This document shows positions 3,937 through 39,577 of a stretch of 64,000 nt of DNA, piece after piece. The DNA lies in sequence record NC_031107.2; one strand, given 5' to 3'. Position numbers and translations under genes: made by a program. Position 1 is the stretch's first letter. Each line of letters opens with the position of its first letter. A model generated the notes under the pieces. It searched no databases. It was not told the origin of the DNA and was given only the letters and a program-made list of their open reading frames with translations.

Positions 3937-3968
3937 TCGAAACACACCAAAACCTTAAGGATCTTTCA

Positions 3969-4769
3969 ATGAAAGCGATTCACACGTTTCGCATGTCAGG
4001 ACAAACGCTTCTGAGCATCGACGAATACGAGAAAAAACACTTCTCTAAACCGGCGAAGTTATTCGAACGTTGCGTGCAGCTGATGCCACATGGCCAACAG
4101 CAGCAACTGGACTTTATCATGGCTTCGTCCATGGACAAGACCGTTGCCGTCATCTTTACCGTTGACGGTGTTCAAGGCAAACGTGATCTCGCTATCACTG
4201 ACCCCGGTAGCCTCGGTGACTTGCTGTTCCGTCACGCGCTGACCACCGCGGTGATTACCGGTGCCCTGGAAGCACAGTACGGTTTTGCCTACTGCTACTT
4301 CTACGCCCAGAAAATCTCCAACACCATCGTGCCGGGCGACGTGGATACTTATCCGCAGTATATCGAGCAGCTGACACCGGCTGAGTTCGGTGAGAACGAA
4401 GACTACGAGTTCAACGTCTTCCGTTTCACCATGGTCGGCGAATCGCGTGTCAAAGAGTTCACCACGGCGTTCCGTGCGGTTGTCCGTTATGCGGTACTGC
4501 CGTCGGATGAAGGTATTTCCAGCAACTTCAATGAAGTGTTCCCGGTATTGCAGCTGGGGCCGTATATCACCTTCAACGGCTACGTGCCGTTCCCAGCACA
4601 GATTGTCGGGCCGCTGAACGACAACTCGATTCTGCCGATTGCCGAAGACCGCGACCTGTACAACTCGAAAGCGGTGATGTTGGTCAGTGAAGATCGCTTC
4701 AACATCTCCATCCAGGCGGGTATCAATGACCACGCAATTGCGGTCACTGAGAAGATGGCGCTGCGTTAA
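3969..4769 (+). CDS. Hypothetical protein, 266 aa, strong high-expression codon bias (possibly virion)
   Basis: SD ccttAAGGA; C-ending codon bias; followed by a terminator. Confidence 0.7.
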   Translation: MKAIHTFRMSGQTLLSIDEYEKKHFSKPAKLFERCVQLMPHGQQQQLDFIMASSMDKTVAVIFTVDGVQGKRDLAITDPGSLGDLLFRHALTTAVITGALEAQYGFAYCYFYAQKISNTIVPGDVDTYPQYIEQLTPAEFGENEDYEFNVFRFTMVGESRVKEFTTAFRAVVRYAVLPSDEGISSNFNEVFPVLQLGPYITFNGYVPFPAQIVGPLNDNSILPIAEDRDLYNSKAVMLVSEDRFNISIQAGINDHAIAVTEKMALR

Positions 4770-4773
4770 CCGT

Positions 4774-4810
4774 TACCCGACCTCCTTGTGGGGTCGGGTA
4801 TCCTTTATTT
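4774..4810 (+). terminator. Intrinsic terminator
   Basis: tacccgacc...ggtcgggta stem followed by a T-rich tract. Confidence 0.7.
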
Positions 4811-4940
4811 GTTTGCTAAAAGCCACACAGAGGCCATAACGCTATCTCAGGCAACGTATGTACCATAATCGCTTAGAACGCGTTACAGCGCGTTTGAGAG
4901 CGTTTTTAGGGGGATAAAAATAAAGTTTGACTCCAATCAT

Positions 4941-5015
4941 TTTCAGATATATATTACCTGCATGAGAGAAAACAATTATCTCTCTAATTCGACCATTACC
5001 TAAAGGAGTTTTAAA
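4941..5015 (+). promoter_or_regulatory. Early promoter (AGATATATATTAC) with leader hairpin, TCGACCA box and SD
   Basis: Contains TATATTAC, the published phiKZ early consensus; the module recurs at 34794 and 55113. Confidence 0.7.
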
Positions 5016-5261
5016 ATGACTAAGATTGAATTCATGAAAGACATGACCAAATGTTTCGGTATCGCTGTTCTGACCTTGGCAGCATTCATCATCGGTTTCA
5101 TGTCTCCGTTCGCGGTTATCGATGCCGTGACGTACCTGACCGGTAACATGGTTATCGGTGCACTCACTGGCGGTGCTTGGGGTGCAACCCTGCTGTGTGG
5201 TAGCCTGCTCGGCTGGCCTAACAAACTGGCTAATTACCTGAAAGCCAAATTCAAGAAGTAA
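5016..5261 (+). CDS. Small membrane protein, 81 aa, 2 hydrophobic segments
   Basis: SD cctaAAGGAG; two hydrophobic stretches; basic C-terminus. Confidence 0.75.
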   Translation: MTKIEFMKDMTKCFGIAVLTLAAFIIGFMSPFAVIDAVTYLTGNMVIGALTGGAWGATLLCGSLLGWPNKLANYLKAKFKK

Positions 5262-5270
5262 CAACAAAGC

Positions 5271-5295
5271 AGGCCACCACACGGTGGCCTTTTTT
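5271..5295 (+). terminator. Intrinsic terminator
   Basis: aggccacc-acac-ggtggcct followed by a T tract. Confidence 0.75.
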
Positions 5296-5341
5296 ACGTC
5301 CGGCAATTAACTCGACCATTATCTATTAAAGGAATACGACC

Positions 5342-5486
5342 ATGATTTCTCGCAAACATAAACTCGCTATTTATTCTATCGCCGTGGCTGTACTGGTAAC
5401 AGTTGGCATGATGACTGTAAACAACGACTACAACACCTGCCGTGCCAACGGTAACTCAGTTGCAATGTGCACAGGACGTGGCTAAG
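5342..5486 (+). pseudogene. Small membrane-peptide gene apparently frameshifted right after its ATG
   Basis: SD + ATG at 5342, but the phage-like reading frame (FLANIKLAIYSIAVAVLVTVGMMTVNNDYNTCRANGNSVAMCTGRG*) runs 5346-5486 in the +1 frame and ends 1 nt before the next ATG. Confidence 0.45.
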
Positions 5487-5487
5487 A

Positions 5488-5675
5488 TGACTTTCTCTGA
5501 TAGCGCGTTCGCCGAATTCCTGTCCAACCCACGCACCAAACGCGAGTGGGACAATCTTTCCAACGGAGTGAAACACCGTCGCAATGACGACGATGAAATC
5601 ACCCACGTTACTGCACAAGTGGTGCTCGTCGATTCGACTGGCACCGCCTTCCCATTTTCACAAGAGGTTTACTAA
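5488..5675 (+). CDS. Hypothetical protein, 62 aa
   Basis: TAAG-ATG coupling in the early operon; ATG 5488 is in frame with track ORF 5442..5675. Confidence 0.6.
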
Positions 5676-5676
5676 G

Positions 5677-5850
5677 ATGGCTGTAATCGTAAAGGGCAAT
5701 GGTGAAGTCCGCATTCTGGAAAAGAACGAAACACTGACAACGGATGCCAAGACGCAGCAAAAGGTCTTGGTTGTTAATCCGCGTGTTGTTCCTCTTCCTG
5801 ATTGGAAAAACGAGCTGGCCGAATTCCGTAAACAGCTGGAGAAGAAATAA
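5677..5850 (+). CDS. Hypothetical protein, 57 aa
   Basis: GAGG SD; coupled to both neighbours. Confidence 0.6.
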   Translation: MAVIVKGNGEVRILEKNETLTTDAKTQQKVLVVNPRVVPLPDWKNELAEFRKQLEKK

Positions 5851-6413
5851 TGGATATGAAAAAAGAATACCAGTTCAGTGAGGACAAACCTGACACCACC
5901 ACCAAGCACTACTTTGGTAAGGATGAGCTTGAAGGCGTTAAGCTTCACGAAAAGCTGGATGTTTCGAAAGTGCCAGAAAGCGATTATGCTACCCGCAAGG
6001 CGCAGCTGGCACAATCCGAGCTGGACAAGTTCGATGTATCTCGTGGCTTCCCGGAGAGCCTCAAACCGTGGAACCTTCCACCGGAGAATGTGGGTAAAGG
6101 TGTGGTGTTGAACCACATCAACCATGAAGACCTCCCTGTTGACGCCAACGGTAAGGTTGCCGACATCGCGCCACCCCGCGGCTTCTACCGTGACAAGGAC
6201 GGGAACTTCCGCGACCTTCGTGAGCTACATATGCGTGAACTGGTATTAGGTGGTGATTTTGTAGATGGCGAATCGGTCAAAGTCATCAAAGGTCCAGGCG
6301 GTGATTACGACGGTATCTCCATACCGTTGCGTAAACCTTCCCGTGCTGAGAAGTCTGTCAGCAAATATCGCAATGTGATGAACGGTCTTATCGCCCGTGC
6401 ATCCAAGAAGTAA
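5850..6413 (+). CDS. Hypothetical protein, 187 aa
   Basis: TAATG coupling; followed by a terminator. Confidence 0.7.
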   Translation: MDMKKEYQFSEDKPDTTTKHYFGKDELEGVKLHEKLDVSKVPESDYATRKAQLAQSELDKFDVSRGFPESLKPWNLPPENVGKGVVLNHINHEDLPVDANGKVADIAPPRGFYRDKDGNFRDLRELHMRELVLGGDFVDGESVKVIKGPGGDYDGISIPLRKPSRAEKSVSKYRNVMNGLIARASKK

Positions 6414-6420
6414 AACCAAT

Positions 6421-6446
6421 GCCACCTTCGGGTGGCTTTATTTTTT
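6421..6446 (+). terminator. Intrinsic terminator (UUCG loop)
   Basis: gccacc-ttcg-ggtggc followed by a T-rich tract. Confidence 0.75.
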
Positions 6447-6465
6447 CCCTTAAGGAACAATTTTC

Positions 6466-7350
6466 ATGTTAACTATCGACCAATTCCTACCGAAATCTGC
6501 AGGTGCTGCACCGACGTCTGAAAACGCATCTATCGTACACAAGCACGAAGCAGGCTATCGCCTGACCCGCCATCAGACAGGCAGCTCTGATGTCATCTTC
6601 GTGGTCTGGGATGGCAACACGATTATCGCGCAAGGTTCGTACGACTCCCTGCAAGGACAACAGCGTCTGGCCGACGAAGATAAAATCCAGACTGTCTACC
6701 GTGTGCTGGCCCGCGGCGCGATGTGGTTACTGGTGTTGACCCGCGACCCGATTGCCCGTATGACGGCCTTAAACCACTACAACGACTTCGTAGAAGCGAT
6801 TACCCAACTGGAAGGCTATCAGGACGAGCGTGTAACGCGCGCTATGAGTAGCTGGAAAGAAGAAGGTGAGCTGGCCCACTTCGATGGTAACGCCGTGCTG
6901 GCACGCGCAGAGGCGCTGTATTTGGCCTTCCCAACATGGAATTACGAAATCATCAGTAAAGAAGTCAATGGCGTGAAGATGGAAGCCATGGTGCAATATG
7001 GTGTGCCGGGTATCCGTTTATTGTACACCCACAAAGTGGTGGATGAGAAATCCAAAGCCGGTCAGGAACTGAAACGTTGGTACACGTTACCGCTCGATGG
7101 CGATTGGTATACTGCTGCCAACAACCACTTGTCCATGATGGCAATGATTGCCGAAGGTAACCGCAACGAAATGGCTGCAGACAGCGCACCCCAACCACAA
7201 CCGGTACCGCGACCTACCCGACCACAGTATCCATTCGAGTGTGGTCAATGTGGGGCTAAGTATAACGTCGATGTGATTCATCGACATCAGCCGACCATTG
7301 ATGTGCGTTGCCGTGAGTGTGGCTCAGAAAACCGTAACCTGCCACGCTAA
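6466..7350 (+). CDS. Hypothetical protein with C-terminal zinc ribbon, 294 aa
   Basis: CGQC...CREC after a Pro-rich linker; SD ccttAAGGA. Confidence 0.7.
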   Translation: MLTIDQFLPKSAGAAPTSENASIVHKHEAGYRLTRHQTGSSDVIFVVWDGNTIIAQGSYDSLQGQQRLADEDKIQTVYRVLARGAMWLLVLTRDPIARMTALNHYNDFVEAITQLEGYQDERVTRAMSSWKEEGELAHFDGNAVLARAEALYLAFPTWNYEIISKEVNGVKMEAMVQYGVPGIRLLYTHKVVDEKSKAGQELKRWYTLPLDGDWYTAANNHLSMMAMIAEGNRNEMAADSAPQPQPVPRPTRPQYPFECGQCGAKYNVDVIHRHQPTIDVRCRECGSENRNLPR

Positions 7351-12843: not shown

Positions 12844-12854
12844 CTCTATCTTTT

Positions 12855-12930
12855 TACGCCACGCGCAGTCCCTATGCGAGTCGCGTTCAAAGTATTCTGA
12901 GATAGATATTATCTACGTGGTTGTATCTAT
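12855..12930 (+). promoter_or_regulatory. Tandem promoters: TAC-N15-TATG (12855-12876) and AGATAGATATTATCT (about 12900-12914)
   Basis: Both recurring motifs lie upstream of the 335-aa gene and the nvRNAP subunit. Confidence 0.55.
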
Positions 12931-17801: not shown

Positions 17802-17850
17802 AAAAAGAATACCTACTCCCGAAGGAGTAGGTACCTTTATTTTTTTTTTT
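17801..17850. terminator. Bidirectional terminator
   Basis: acctactcc-cgaa-ggagtaggt (UUCG on the minus strand), A tract on the left and T tract on the right, between convergent genes. Confidence 0.8.
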
Positions 17851-28278: not shown

Positions 28279-28312
28279 TCCTGCCTTCGGGCAGGATTTC
28301 CCTTCTTTTTTC
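28277..28312 (+). terminator. Intrinsic terminator (UUCG loop)
   Basis: aatcctgcc-ttcg-ggcaggatt followed by a T tract. Confidence 0.75.
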
Positions 28313-28343
28313 CAAATACCGCAATGGCTATGGAGGAACGTCT

Positions 28344-31782: not shown

Positions 31783-32385
31783 GTGATGTCTGAGATGATT
31801 CTCGATTCGCTGTTTTTGATAACGATTACCGACATCAACAAAAGCGGTAAACTGCCCCGGACTGTCTGCATCAGCCGTCATGGTTTTACGCGTTCTTATC
31901 ATCTTTCATCGGTGTTAAAAATTGCGTGTACTGTGACGGGGATGAAACGTCCGTCGCAGACCTGTAGTATCAATCACGTTCTGATGATTCTGCAACGTGC
32001 AATCTCCACTATCCGTCGTAAACGTCGTCGGGCATCGTTCCGTTTCTACCCTAACTCTACCAATAAAGTAGTGGGAGGTAACATGGATAACGTTGTCGAT
32101 TTGCGTGAAGCGACGTGCAATGTGCGGGGATTGGCTTTCAACCGACTGCACGCGGTATTACACGAAACCGATCGTGTCCCTACGCCGCAGGAAGGGAAAG
32201 CTGCGCTAGAACTTCTGCGTCAAGCGGAACTGGTGATTGTTGATACCAATATCCAGGCCGTTCGGATTCAGCACTATCTGGCGAAACAAGCACTGCTCGC
32301 GCTGTGTGTAACCGGCGAGCAAGCTTCTGAGTTAACCTTACCCGAAGTACCCGTGTGGGGCGACCCGCAAGTGGATCATCAGTAA
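31783..32385 (+). CDS. Hypothetical protein, 200 aa
   Basis: ORF followed by a terminator. Confidence 0.6.
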   Translation: MMSEMILDSLFLITITDINKSGKLPRTVCISRHGFTRSYHLSSVLKIACTVTGMKRPSQTCSINHVLMILQRAISTIRRKRRRASFRFYPNSTNKVVGGNMDNVVDLREATCNVRGLAFNRLHAVLHETDRVPTPQEGKAALELLRQAELVIVDTNIQAVRIQHYLAKQALLALCVTGEQASELTLPEVPVWGDPQVDHQ

Positions 32386-32387
32386 GG

Positions 32388-32428
32388 TATACCCCCTCAC
32401 TTCGGTGAGGGGATACTCTATTATTTTT
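32388..32428 (+). terminator. Intrinsic terminator (UUCG loop)
   Basis: cccctcac-ttcg-gtgagggg followed by a T-rich tract. Confidence 0.7.
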
Positions 32429-32469
32429 TGGATAGATTTCATTTAAGTGAATCCGCCCCCTTAAGGAGT

Positions 32470-33174
32470 ATGAAATTGGATACACTTATGAAAAGCTTCG
32501 GTGCACGAAATATCAACGAAGTGATGAACCACACCAGTTATCAGTTTGTCAGCCTGCACAGCGATAAAGCCGCCACGATGATGCTCTACTATTTCCGTAT
32601 CGTCGACACACCCGATCGGATGCAAGGGTTTTTCGTGGATGCCAAAAGCGGGATGATTCTGTTTCCCATGGGCTACCAACCAATGTACAAAAAGGAAGAC
32701 CCGTATGTGTACGAGGACGTTCTGTGTGAAGCTTCGCGCTATTATATCGAGCACTGTCGTCTGGATAAGGATATCAAGGAAGCCATGACGCAGGGTGACC
32801 GGATAAAGTTAGCACAACTGGAGCCGACCCTGTATGCACTGTTCGATTTGGCGAACCGGGTTTACAGCACTACGCGTAATGTTCAATTACGAGCTATGAA
32901 GTATCGGGATGTGTTGCAATATGAACGTATCCCAATGGCGGTGCTTGGTAAAGAACGCCAGGTGTGGGTTGAACGTGAAATTCGTTTCTTCTCACGTCAC
33001 GAACAAATCATTTACCGAATTGAATTGGGGGGTACCAAACTCCATCCGCAGGTCATTCAGTTATCACGCAAGTTCACTCTGGGAAGGATTCCAACACTGA
33101 CCGAATTCCTGATGTTGCCTGAGAACCTGCCCTACATGGAAGCTTACTACGCCCGCCGCGATAGTGAGAAGTGA
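32470..33174 (+). CDS. Hypothetical protein, 234 aa
   Basis: ccttAAGGAG SD directly before ATG 32470 (short spacer; ATG 32488 is an alternative). Confidence 0.6.
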   Translation: MKLDTLMKSFGARNINEVMNHTSYQFVSLHSDKAATMMLYYFRIVDTPDRMQGFFVDAKSGMILFPMGYQPMYKKEDPYVYEDVLCEASRYYIEHCRLDKDIKEAMTQGDRIKLAQLEPTLYALFDLANRVYSTTRNVQLRAMKYRDVLQYERIPMAVLGKERQVWVEREIRFFSRHEQIIYRIELGGTKLHPQVIQLSRKFTLGRIPTLTEFLMLPENLPYMEAYYARRDSEK

Positions 33175-33179
33175 TTTTT

Positions 33180-33232
33180 TACGTCAGTAGCAGTGTATAT
33201 GCAATACCCGTAGTGAGTCGGGCAAAACTCAC
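33180..33232 (+). promoter_or_regulatory. TAC-N15-TATG promoter followed by an H-type pseudoknot in the 5' leader
   Basis: S1 CCCG/CGGG, L1 TA, S2 GTGAGT/ACTCAC, L3 CAAA. Confidence 0.55.
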
Positions 33233-33262
33233 CACACCTTAACTTATATAGAGAGAAACCTC

Positions 33263-34015
33263 ATGTTAGAAGCAAATGTACTGTTTTCCAAAGACGGCAA
33301 GAAAACCATCAGTATCCTTGAGTCCAACGTCAAACATCGGTCTGACGCATTTAAACGATACCGTATGGCGATTACCGACGTAACCACTGGTGAAGTGTGG
33401 TCTTTTGCCACAAACATCAATGCGGCGGTTTCTTTGCCCCCTGAGGAAAACAAAGCTCGCGCGGTACAAGCTTTCATGAATGAGCTCGGTATCCTGTTCT
33501 TTAAATTGATTGTACGCCGGGAAGAAACGCGTGAAGCCTACATCGCCGATGATTGGGAAAAGCTCGCAGAACTCTGCCCGCGCTACACGATCACAAAAGA
33601 TTTCCTGGGACCGGTTTCCGAATATCTACTCGGAACGATATGGGTGCATCCGCCAGTCACGCAGTCGCGCAAGGCCAGTTTAAATTTCCGTGCTAATCAC
33701 CGCGGGGTTGATTTGGTTGTGGGCTGTAAGCTTGGCTGGAGTCAGCGCGCCATCGATTCCCAACAGGTCACTGCCACTTACAGCTTCGGACTACAGAGCG
33801 GTACGATGAATGATTTTCGTGACATTGGAAATCTCGAACTGCGCCATTCGTACAAGAAAGCCGAATGGCCATCGGTTAAGCAATTCATGGCCGAGCCACG
33901 AGTCGAACGTGTACTCGATGCCTGGTTAATGTCGCACAAGTATTTTGAATTGAAGGGCCCGGCGGTTGAAATGAACCCCGACCCAATCTCCACACTTAAT
34001 AACAACGAGAAGTAA
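33263..34015 (+). CDS. Hypothetical protein, 250 aa (monocistronic)
   Basis: ORF bounded by its own promoter and terminator. Confidence 0.7.
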   Translation: MLEANVLFSKDGKKTISILESNVKHRSDAFKRYRMAITDVTTGEVWSFATNINAAVSLPPEENKARAVQAFMNELGILFFKLIVRREETREAYIADDWEKLAELCPRYTITKDFLGPVSEYLLGTIWVHPPVTQSRKASLNFRANHRGVDLVVGCKLGWSQRAIDSQQVTATYSFGLQSGTMNDFRDIGNLELRHSYKKAEWPSVKQFMAEPRVERVLDAWLMSHKYFELKGPAVEMNPDPISTLNNNEK

Positions 34016-34035
34016 GTAGTCTATTCTTCCCGCCC

Positions 34036-34066
34036 AGGAGACCTTCGGGTCTCCTTCTTTTTTTTT
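34036..34066 (+). terminator. Intrinsic terminator (UUCG loop)
   Basis: aggagacc-ttcg-ggtctcct followed by a T tract. Confidence 0.8.
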
Positions 34067-34067
34067 C

Positions 34068-34089
34068 TACGCCCCGTGCTAATAGTGTG
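34068..34089 (+). promoter_or_regulatory. TAC-N15-TGTG motif
   Basis: cTAC gccccgtgctaatag TGTG. Confidence 0.5.
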
Positions 34090-34122
34090 AACAGCAACAA
34101 TAAAATAACTCGGGGAATTATC

Positions 34123-34746
34123 ATGTTAAAATCAGTGTCATTAGACGGCCCAGACTTTGCAGGGAAAGACACGCTGTCTAATCTCATTGTGGGTATGCTA
34201 CGTGCAGCGGGGGTCAATGCGGTGATGATTAATCACCCAACCTCCGTAACGGAGCCGGGGATTCGTGCACGCAATCTGGTGGGGCAGAGTGCATCGAAGC
34301 AAAAGATTGCCGAAGCCATGTGTGAAGACTTCCACATCACCATGGATGAAAAGGTACCGCTTTATGACGTGGTCATCTTTAACCGCTTCTGTCTGTCAAC
34401 AATTGCGTACCAGGGTGTTGATGGGAAAGGTGAAGTGTTCCGCTCCCGTGTCGCCGATCACCCCAACGCCCCACAACTCTACGTGGCGTTGGATATCGAT
34501 TACGCTACCGCTATGGAGCGTTACAAGAAACGTTTAGCAGCCCAGGGCAAGAACTGGGACGATGATGTACTGACGTCGCGCTACCTTCAGGACGAGAAGG
34601 CGTGGAACGGTTTGCGTGATGCGTATCGTTTTGCTCACCAAATCGTCACCGAGGGTGGGGACAAGTTCCCGTTAATGAACGTGGTGTCGGACGACAACAT
34701 TACATTAACCGCCAGCCGAATCGTACAACGTATTCTGGAAGGTTGA
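34123..34746 (+). CDS. tmk: Thymidylate (dNMP) kinase, 207 aa
   Basis: P-loop LDGPDFAGKDT; IFNRFCLSTIAYQG matches the dTMPK DR(F/Y)..S..AYQG motif; LDID..TAMER. Confidence 0.8.
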   Translation: MLKSVSLDGPDFAGKDTLSNLIVGMLRAAGVNAVMINHPTSVTEPGIRARNLVGQSASKQKIAEAMCEDFHITMDEKVPLYDVVIFNRFCLSTIAYQGVDGKGEVFRSRVADHPNAPQLYVALDIDYATAMERYKKRLAAQGKNWDDDVLTSRYLQDEKAWNGLRDAYRFAHQIVTEGGDKFPLMNVVSDDNITLTASRIVQRILEG

Positions 34747-34750
34747 TACA

Positions 34751-34787
34751 ACCCCTCTTACCTTCGGGTAAGGGGGAGCTTTATTTT
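34751..34787 (+). terminator. Intrinsic terminator (UUCG loop)
   Basis: ccc(ct)cttacc-ttcg-ggtaagggg followed by a T-rich tract. Confidence 0.65.
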
Positions 34788-34793
34788 AAATAT

Positions 34794-34868
34794 TCTCAGA
34801 TATATTTTACCTAGGTGAGAGTTGTTGGTTGAACTCTTAATCGACTATTAATCTAAAGGAGTATTACC
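34794..34868 (+). promoter_or_regulatory. Early promoter/leader module
   Basis: cagatatattttacctaggtgagag, hairpin, TCGACTA, ctAAAGGAG. Confidence 0.65.
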
Positions 34869-35240
34869 ATGGCACGTTTTAAACACGAATCTGTACATCT
34901 CGTAAAAATGAAATTCTTGGTACGTTTGTCTTTCATTATCAAACGTATTACCGAGGTGGATATCACCCAGAAAGAACTGGCCGAGTTCATCGGGTGTTCT
35001 GCTTCCCAAATCTCCGCCGTGAAGAACGAGCGTGAGAAAGCCGTTACCGTACAAACCCTGATGCGTATCGCCGATGCGCTCAAGCTGACCTACAGCATTG
35101 AGCTGCGTTCTTTCAACGGTAAAGTTACTGAGAACTTCCGTCTGGAATCGGCGGTCGAGTACATGAAAGAGAATCCTATCCGCGTACTGGAAACCGGGAT
35201 TCGTGTTCTGGCTCGTCGTCAAAATGTCGTTACGCACTGA
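34869..35240 (+). CDS. XRE-family HTH transcriptional regulator, 123 aa
   Basis: ITQKELAEFIGCSASQISAVKN...TVQTLMRIADAL is a canonical Cro/C1 HTH. Confidence 0.8.
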   Translation: MARFKHESVHLVKMKFLVRLSFIIKRITEVDITQKELAEFIGCSASQISAVKNEREKAVTVQTLMRIADALKLTYSIELRSFNGKVTENFRLESAVEYMKENPIRVLETGIRVLARRQNVVTH

Positions 35241-36060: not shown

Positions 36061-36095
36061 GGGGAGCTTCGGCTCCCTTTCTTTTTTGTCTTTTT
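36061..36095 (+). terminator. Intrinsic terminator (UUCG loop)
   Basis: gggagc-ttcg-gctccc followed by T tracts. Confidence 0.75.
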
Positions 36096-36116
36096 ACAAG
36101 ATACCCTATTGTTGTG
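36095..36116 (+). promoter_or_regulatory. TAC-N15-TGTG motif upstream of dam
   Basis: ttttTAC aagataccctattgt TGTG. Confidence 0.5.
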
Positions 36117-36254
36117 AAAGCGTGTGTCTTTTCTGACACAGCGTAAACAAACACCTACGGCTTGCACAGCAATGCGTGCTCAAGATGACGTGGTTATCAG
36201 GGAAGTAACTAAAAACCTGCCACAGCGCGTCTGAGCGCGTTTTAGAGGGTATTA

Positions 36255-37073
36255 ATGATTAAACCAATTCTTAAGTGGATGGGCGGGAAATCTCGTATCC
36301 TCCCAATCCTATTACAACACCTGCCACAACGAGGAACCTTCGTGGAGCCGTTCGTCGGGGCAGGGTCGGTATTCCTTAATACCAATTACGACAACTATAT
36401 CCTGGCGGACTCCAATCCAGACTTGATTGAGTTGTTGGTTATCGCAAAGGATGAACCGGAAGCTTTGATTGCGGCCACCCAACCGTTGTTTTTGGACGGG
36501 AATGTTCGCAGGACGTTTATGGAGCGTCGAGAAGCTTTCAACGCGGCAGGCACGGATGGGATGTCGCGGGTTAATCGTGCAGCAATGTTTTTATACTTAA
36601 TGCGTCACGGGTACAACGGCATGTGTCGCTATAACGGAGGTGGGGGTTTTAATGTACCGTTCGGGAAATACCCCAAAGGGGTGTATTATCCGCTGAACGA
36701 GATTAATGCCTGGGCGAAGAAATGTCGGGAGACCAATGTTACTTTGCTGTGTGCAGATTTCCGTGTTGTGCTGGAGTCGTGTCCAGACGATGCTGTTATC
36801 TACGCAGACCCACCGTATATTCCGCTGTCGGATACAGCGAAACATGCTCAGTACCACAAAAAAGAATTTTCGCAGACCGACCACCGTGTGTTATCCAAGC
36901 TTCTGTTCCAACAGGTAAAGCGGGGGAACAACGTGGTGCTGTCTAATGCGGATACTTTATTAACCCGCGAAATATACCACGGCTTTAACTGGCATACAGT
37001 TGAGGTTGGGCGGTTTATGTCGGCGGACAAATCCAAACGCAAAACGGTACCCGAACTTATCGGTGTGCTGTAA
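36255..37073 (+). CDS. dam: Dam-family DNA adenine methyltransferase, 272 aa
   Basis: LKWMGGK, EPFVGAGSV (SAM binding), YNGMCRYN..G.FNVPFG, YADPPY catalytic motif, LSN. Confidence 0.9.
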   Translation: MIKPILKWMGGKSRILPILLQHLPQRGTFVEPFVGAGSVFLNTNYDNYILADSNPDLIELLVIAKDEPEALIAATQPLFLDGNVRRTFMERREAFNAAGTDGMSRVNRAAMFLYLMRHGYNGMCRYNGGGGFNVPFGKYPKGVYYPLNEINAWAKKCRETNVTLLCADFRVVLESCPDDAVIYADPPYIPLSDTAKHAQYHKKEFSQTDHRVLSKLLFQQVKRGNNVVLSNADTLLTREIYHGFNWHTVEVGRFMSADKSKRKTVPELIGVL

Positions 37074-39508: not shown

Positions 39509-39555
39509 TAAGGCGTTCCTCCTTGCCTACGGGTGAGGAGGTTCCTTTATTTTTT

Positions 39556-39577
39556 TACACCGACCAGCCTAGTTATG
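39556..39577 (+). promoter_or_regulatory. TAC-N15-TATG motif
   Basis: tttttTAC accgaccagcctagt TATG after the terminator hairpin at about 39515-39550. Confidence 0.55.

Follow-up and report, generated by a model that had tools for sequence, protein, structure and literature searches.

A predicted H-type pseudoknot in the leaders of a tandem gene family of SPN3US-like jumbo phages

The leader of gp116 in Erwinia phage vB_EamM_Asesino (NC_031107.2), a 246-kb SPN3US-like jumbo phage of the genus Erskinevirus, contained a 26-nt element that was very probably a real, selected H-type pseudoknot. This judgement concerned the knot as a whole and was based on the comparison of homologous leaders, with respect to both pairing and covariation, rather than on any single sequence. 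For the second stem (S2) alone, it could be made with greater confidence still. The element was found before genes of the phrog_6820 family, where its distance to the start codon was held within narrow limits. Our main reading was that the knot belongs to the translation-initiation region of these genes and might serve as a standby site or enhancer anchor for the 30S subunit or ribosomal protein S1, perhaps doubling as a repressor operator. We gave this reading a probability of about 0.45.

Structure and conservation of the element

The analysis covered a stretch of 64,000 nt, here called the window, whose positions equal those of NC_031107.2 minus 62000; the region matched that record with 100% identity. 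The features of the gp116 locus are collected in Table 1. All the pairings that had been proposed for this leader (S1 and S2, with L1, L3 and no L2 between them) could be read directly from the sequence. The resulting knot would have S2 stacked directly on S1 and would be separated from the ATG (33263) by 30 nt. Taken by themselves, the stems were of modest stability, with ViennaRNA energies of -2.5 to -5.6 kcal/mol for S1 and -2.1 to -8.1 kcal/mol for S2.

Table 1. Features of the gp116 locus (window positions)
Feature	Position	Strand	Remarks
gp115	32470..33174	+	tandem paralogue (phrog_6820) without pseudoknot; no Pfam match; strong Shine-Dalgarno sequence; other conserved element upstream
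Upstream promoter box TTTTTTAC	33175..33182	+	at about -26 to -19 relative to a start at G33201
TATG box	33198..33201	+	transcription predicted to begin at G33201, as in phiKZ late promoters
S1 5' strand CCCG	33207..33210	+	CCG invariant in 25/25; first base covaries with 33222
L1 TA, predicted to cross the deep groove of S2	33211..33212	+	2 nt in 24/25, 1 nt in Machina gp111; sequence free
S2 5' strand GTGAGT	33213..33218	+	all six pairs vary on both sides; about 16 helices
S1 3' strand CGGG, within the S2 hairpin loop	33219..33222	+	CGG invariant; fourth pair covaries
L3 CAAA, A-rich, predicted to cross the minor groove of S1	33223..33226	+	TAAA 16, CAAA 5, rest NAAG/GTAG/TAA
S2 3' strand ACTCAC	33227..33232	+	covarying partner of 33213..33218
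G-poor spacer without conserved structure	33233..33262	+	weak Shine-Dalgarno-like AGAGAGA at 33250-33256
gp116	33263..34015	+	250 aa, phrog_6820, function unknown; no Pfam match
Intrinsic-terminator-like hairpin and T run, 3' of gp116	34036..34066	+	hairpin proper 34036-34055

A single sequence is by itself no proof of such a knot, and the original prediction rightly cautioned that an S1 of 4 bp could have arisen by chance. A generic H-type descriptor (S1 4 bp, S2 6 bp, L1 1-3, L2 0-1 and L3 3-6 nt, Watson-Crick pairs only) had 13 matches on both strands of the window, compared with 2.8 +/- 2.0 in 30 dinucleotide shuffles, and the nested fold of the gp116 leader had a z-score of only -0.48. 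With the exact geometry of the knot, there were 2 matches in the window against 0.13 in the shuffles. The other exact match, at 17812-17837 on the minus strand, was a G+C-rich hairpin with a TTCG loop between the convergent genes gp96 and gp97, most likely a terminator that matched the knot by chance.

The leaders of homologous genes were taken by gene position only and not by motif. The same architecture was present in those of phiEaH2, Stratton, Caitlin, ChrisDB, SPN3US, EC001, Proteus phage 7, pSal-SNUABM-04 and pEa_SNUABM_4, 9, 11 and 43. A covariance model was built from 17 leaders; S2 was the only structure that it encoded, and the columns of the fourth S1 pair had no pairing term. It added copies from Machina, Kwan, one IMG/VR genome and one metagenome contig, for a total of 26 copies (25 distinct) in 14 records of Erskine-, Machina-, Seoul- and Wellingtonvirus. 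Logan contigs held further variants fitting the same scheme, so that about 30 copies were known overall. Protein-based searches for the locus in IMG/VR and a metagenome collection gave only a few extra loci, and a broad alignment of 16 sequences was too divergent to be a useful search seed. A scan of the sequence collection with the spacer motif returned, among the matches listed, random ones, none with S2 complementarity.

Over the 25 distinct leaders, 97.6% of the cells were paired; slid controls gave 18-40% and shuffled alignments 72.8%, with none of 500 shuffles as high as the real alignment. For covariation, the score was 0.704 versus 0.187, and again no shuffle out of 500 reached it. A gapless MAFFT alignment gave a similar result, with 98.2% of the cells paired. 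S2 occurred as about 16 different helices with compensatory changes in all six pairs, and RNAalifold predicted this stem independently and nothing else in the leader. Thus, the covariation that the original prediction had suggested looking for in orthologous leaders was found, and the S2 pairing was conserved.

The three CCG/CGG pairs of S1 showed no variation in any of the 25 leaders and contributed no covariation signal. Their invariance therefore spoke neither for nor against pairing, a site for a sequence-specific protein being a possible explanation instead. The fourth S1 pair (33207 with 33222) was more informative. It was G.U in 13 leaders, C-G in 6, A-U in 4 and U-A in 2, and hence paired in all 25, a result that none of 200000 permutations reached. 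On the protein tree, the C-G pair of Asesino and phiEaH2 arose within a G.U clade, and SNUABM_4 had U-A where its sister Machina had C-G (support 100/98). This pattern implied at least two independent double substitutions that preserved the pair. Additionally, the alignment contained 20 G.U cells, with which the fold would be possible on the sense strand only, and this pointed to RNA as the functional molecule. The loop lengths were compatible with an H-type knot throughout (L1 of 2 nt, once 1; L3 of 4 nt, once 3; no L2). In the gp109-like subgroup, L3 was effectively 5 nt long and the last S2 pair was a C.A mismatch. Between Asesino and phiEaH2, the intergenic leader was about 95% identical, compared with 78% for the flanking 2.4 kb.

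Transcription of the gp116 locus

The gene next after gp116 was the thymidylate kinase gene (gp117). It had been proposed that gp116 was transcribed as a monocistronic mRNA, which fitted the promoter-like site before the knot and the terminator-like hairpin after the gene. The claim had to be relaxed in one respect: there was no terminator between gp115 and gp116, so read-through transcripts from gp115 were also possible.

The promoter-like site consisted of TAC (33180-33182), 15 variable bases and TATG, and the knot began 6 nt past the G of this TATG, as had been predicted. As a promoter motif, the literal TAC-N15-TATG was not enriched in the window (8 occurrences versus 5.7 expected), nor was GTATATG. 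It was the longer form that stood out: TTTTTAC-N15-TATG with at most one mismatch occurred 6 times in the window versus 0.93 expected (0 of 100 shuffles reached this number), and each of the six sites preceded a gene and had the matching orientation. Besides the site before gp116, copies of T5AC-N15-T(A/G)TG were seen at 12851-12876, 28307-28332, 36091-36116 and 39552-39577 (+), at 9119-9094 (-) and at about 34064-34096 (+). They preceded gp93, gp108, gp121, gp126, gp89 and gp117, each in the orientation of its gene, and the copy before the thymidylate kinase gene was a T(G)TG variant. The TAC-N15-TATG spacing was kept, with a variable N15, in Caitlin, ChrisDB, SPN3US, pSal-04, SNUABM_9, SNUABM_4, Machina and UViG11862.

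In phiKZ, late promoters have the form T-3ATG+1, and middle promoters have an AT-rich box near -24 (PMC7598289). The Asesino sites, with a TATG box 15 bp past a T-rich box ending in TAC and a location upstream of genes, were similar to the promoters of the phiKZ non-virion RNA polymerase and united both of these features, namely the late TATG and an upstream T-rich box as in the middle promoters. Unlike the described phiKZ promoters, the Asesino group had a fixed bipartite T5AC-N15-T(A/G)TG, for which the literature searched held no description in SPN3US-like phages; it would provide a sharper promoter consensus for the non-virion polymerase of this group. By analogy, the gp116 knot appeared to be transcribed from a promoter that resembles the phiKZ non-virion-polymerase type, with G33201 as the putative start. 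With such a start, 6 nt of the gp116 message would precede the knot. The sequencing runs with small parts of this region were all wastewater contigs.

Two other upstream regions of the window were also notable. At 32393-32450, a terminator-like hairpin was followed by a box with TTTTTGGATAGAT (32425-32437), which was unique in the window and was kept at the same locus in Caitlin, ChrisDB, SPN3US, EC001, pSal-04, SNUABM_4 and SNUABM_9. It preceded the knot-less first paralogue or, in SPN3US, the knot promoter itself. This box was probably a different class of promoter or operator. Between a promoter-like site and the DNA methyltransferase gene gp121, the leader (36117-36341) was unusually long, at about 226 nt, and contained several inverted repeats.

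Position before the start codon and association with one gene family

In every copy, the 3' end of the knot was 21-30 nt from the AUG, whether the knot was located behind a promoter, behind a terminator or over the stop codon of the upstream gene. Upstream of the knot, the context varied. The gp116/gp99-like subgroup had a conserved T5AC-N15-TATG box, and the knot started at the G of TATG in the Machinavirus type, 6 nt after it in Asesino and 8 nt after it in SPN3US. In other paralogues the knot began 3 nt past the T run of a terminator. Thus, the constant feature was the distance to the start codon and not to the 5' end. Accordingly, the location at the 5' end of a monocistronic mRNA, as originally proposed, did not hold as a general property, since many paralogue knots followed a terminator in this way and some overlapped an upstream stop codon. 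Namely, in pEa_SNUABM_11 (L007:3690-3715), the stop of the upstream paralogue was the UAA inside L3 of the knot of the next gene, and the orthologous knot of Kwan (L159:4178-4203) overlapped the end, at L159:4196, of the annotated upstream gene gp128. Where a knot covers an upstream stop codon, the terminating ribosome would have to melt it, and this could couple the translation of both genes.

The proposal of an unstructured leader after the knot agreed with the comparison, at least in that no conserved structure was present there. RNAalifold gave S2 only, with no conserved helix in the spacer and none over the Shine-Dalgarno sequence or the AUG, and in the leader set the first 12 nt past the knot contained 2.3% G. 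Most copies had UUAAA/UAAA both in L3 and in the spacer, which contained 0-2 UUAA(A) units. The ribosome-binding site was 10-16 nt downstream of the knot, and its Shine-Dalgarno-like element was usually AGAGAGA. The mean energy of the anti-Shine-Dalgarno duplex was -4.9 kcal/mol for 26 knot-led genes versus -6.75 kcal/mol for 60 other genes of the Asesino window (Mann-Whitney p = 3e-7), where the knot-led genes were related, non-independent and pooled from several phages and the background came from Asesino alone. For gp116 itself the value was -3.5 kcal/mol, and only 1 of the 60 other window genes was as weak or weaker.

The element was closely tied to one gene family. When ten complete phage genomes (about 2.4 Mb) were searched with the covariance model, all clear matches (at least 24 bits) were located in the tandem phrog_6820 cluster. 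Machina had one marginal match outside the cluster (E = 0.044). An Asesino match of 21.7 bits inside the gp236 coding sequence was partial and without CCG/CGG, and it was rejected as chance. Five genomes had 15 phrog_6820 genes, all in one cluster, and 12 of the 15 carried the knot. The three knot-less genes were the first of each array (gp115/gp107 type) and had strong AAGGAG-type ribosome-binding sites and another conserved element upstream. An uncultivated relative (IMGVR_UViG_3300011862_000001, 3947-7141) had five tandem phrog_6820 genes. Four of these five each had their own knot with a different S2 helix, which showed that the gene had been duplicated repeatedly together with its leader.

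The proteins of the family had diverged down to 13-30% identity. All of them were mildly basic (pI 8.3-9.6), with conserved aromatic and basic residues at F79, F80, K81, R85, K86, R143 and W202. The AlphaFold2 model of gp116 was a confident one (from an alignment of 13 sequences; pLDDT 83, pTM 0.78) and consisted of two halves, each a beta-sheet with helices, around a helical insert. The original prediction that gp116 is a nucleic-acid-binding protein, possibly with an OB or RNA-binding fold, found no counterpart in this model, which had neither an OB fold nor a recognised nucleic-acid-binding domain. Searches of Pfam (including SSB), PDB sequences, Foldseek against the PDB (nothing at E <=0.001) and ESM-Atlas gave no lead. 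In VIA-align, the best Z was 5.3, with PUR and Whirly chains at 3.3-4.1 and phiKZ Dip at 4.0, all at the level of noise. According to BFVD, the fold was widespread in jumbo phages, and its matches were always uncharacterised. RNA binding by gp116 was thus neither supported nor contradicted by the predicted structure.

Possible roles and known systems

A role in translation initiation was suggested by the fixed distance between knot and AUG, by a spacer that was practically free of G and had no conserved structure, and by the weakness of the Shine-Dalgarno sequences. The 30S subunit or ribosomal protein S1 would dock or stand by on the knot and the spacer, with the knot placed just outside the ribosome footprint, and genes with very weak Shine-Dalgarno sequences could in this way be translated. 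A repressor protein might also use the invariant S1/L3 face as a handle. We counted the strong AAGGAG-type sites of the knot-less paralogues in favour of a link to translation, and the absence of the knot before genes outside the family against a general enhancer. The structure and its conservation, the exclusive link to the gene family, the fixed distance to the AUG and the weak Shine-Dalgarno sequences were direct results of the analysis, whereas the binding partner and the sign of the effect, positive or negative, are inferences.

A less probable but serious alternative was that the element was a translational operator, either autogenous, as originally proposed, or family-wide, where a phrog_6820 protein would bind the S1/L3 face of the knot and block initiation of its own gene and its paralogues as T4 gp32 does. 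Such a role would account for the location of the element solely before this family in 10 genomes and its retention through duplication and strong protein divergence, although this exclusivity was explicable by inheritance through duplication alone. It would also account for the invariant sequence of S1 and L3 next to a freely drifting S2, and the UUAAA/UAAA in L3 and the spacer of most copies was the same as in the T4 operator (PMC535899). The basic character of the proteins and their conserved aromatic and basic residues were compatible with it as well. However, neither an OB fold nor a Pfam domain was seen in gp116, and none of its structural neighbours was significant, the PUR and Whirly matches being within noise; fast-evolving tandem paralogues were unlike an essential ssDNA-binding protein; the spacer did not have the length of more than 40 nt; and the first paralogue of each array had no knot. 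A little more doubtful was the specific proposal that the phrog_6820 proteins recognise the invariant S1/L3 face and are RNA-binding proteins of a new kind, with the paralogues as a self- and cross-regulating translational circuit. If true, it would pair a new protein fold with a new family of RNA operators in nucleus-forming jumbo phages. The standby and operator models are compatible with each other.

The remaining explanations were less probable. A knot at or near a primary or RNase E-cut 5' end could stabilise the message or act as a processing barrier, guarding against 5'-end-dependent decay. This would suit the Machinavirus-type leaders, in which the first base of the knot was the G of TATG and thus the predicted +1, and the paralogues whose knots began 3 nt past the AU-rich tail of a terminator, where RNase E could plausibly cut. 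We considered it unlikely, since a plain hairpin would suffice for such a task and the invariant S1/L3 and the covarying fourth S1 pair would be left unexplained. Moreover, the 5' ends in Asesino and SPN3US would still have 6-7 nt unpaired, the knots of pEa_SNUABM_11 and Kwan were located within a polycistronic stretch and overlapped a stop codon, and the fixed distance to the AUG pointed to translation. More improbable was the possibility that there was no knot at all and only the S2 hairpin was functional, or even a neutral passenger, with the S1 complementarity as a sequence motif or a coincidence. The invariant CCG/CGG indeed gave no covariation, and nested MFE folding produced S2 only, but a fourth S1 pair of four types, paired in every leader and restored by at least two independent double changes, argued for the knot. 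So did the loop lengths, which were held within the H-type range (L1 1-2 nt, L3 3-5 nt, no L2), and a leader far better conserved than its coding flanks. Finally, the compact knot with its invariant core and A-rich L3, near a thymidylate kinase gene, brought to mind a small-molecule riboswitch such as preQ1-I, SAM-II or guanidine-III. We regarded this as very improbable because there was no expression platform (the knot sequestered neither the Shine-Dalgarno sequence nor the AUG, and no terminator or anti-terminator was present between knot and ORF) and no match to an Rfam family even at E up to 10. In addition, the knot had no unpaired junction bases for a pocket, and the genes that it would control were not metabolic.

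Judged by Rfam and the literature searched, the knot before the phrog_6820 genes is a new and undescribed RNA element whose general type is known, and it probably acts in the control of protein synthesis. A cmscan of 32000-35000 against Rfam 15 with E up to 10 gave only an unrelated engA match (E = 8) elsewhere in that stretch. In the literature searched, nothing combined a pseudoknot with SPN3US, and the records on pseudoknots and jumbo phages were, by title and abstract, passing mentions on unrelated topics. To our knowledge, well-supported natural H-type pseudoknots of very small size are rare. This element has 10 stacked base pairs in 26 nt, its S2 occurs in about 16 natural variants, and one of its S1 pairs covaries. 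It would provide material for structural and folding studies and is a candidate for a new RNA family. Phages similar to phiKZ and SPN3US transcribe their genes inside a protein-walled compartment and translate them outside, and we know of almost nothing on their post-transcriptional control. A conserved leader element, one expanding gene family and weak Shine-Dalgarno sites would together be a direct experimental entry point.

Compact triplex-forming H-type knots, as in preQ1-I, SAM-II and the luteovirus frameshift signals, have two short coaxial stems and an A-rich L3 over a G-C-rich S1. The jumbo-phage element was similar in its short, coaxially stacked stems and its A-rich L3 over a G-C-rich S1, and it differed in having no junction for a ligand pocket, no sequestration of the Shine-Dalgarno sequence, no slippery site and no Rfam match. 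In the T4 gene 32 operator, a less structured region with UUAAA/UAAA comes after a knot of about 28 nt (PMC535899). The similarity to this layout that had been noted at the outset was real: as in T4 and RB69, a small H-type knot, here of 26 nt, was located at the 5' edge and was followed by an A/U-rich stretch leading to the ribosome-binding site (PMC535899). In contrast to gene 32, the spacer was 21-30 nt rather than more than 40 nt, the product was not, according to its model, an OB-fold ssDNA-binding protein, and the element headed a tandem array of fast-evolving paralogues and was an operator only putatively; the likeness was one of layout, with no sequence relation shown between the two knots. 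For tisB, a 5' pseudoknot and a single-stranded region form a standby site that binds S1 and the 30S subunit and is required to load 30S onto a message whose ribosome-binding site is poor or inaccessible (PMC7708055). In tisB, that site is sequestered in structure at a distance of about 100 nt, whereas here it was 10-16 nt downstream, weak and without conserved structure. A 5'-proximal position as in tisB would depend on the predicted start at the G of TATG and would fail for the copies behind terminators. What the gp116-type leaders shared with tisB was a knot with an adjoining single-stranded stretch before a poor ribosome-binding site (PMC7708055).
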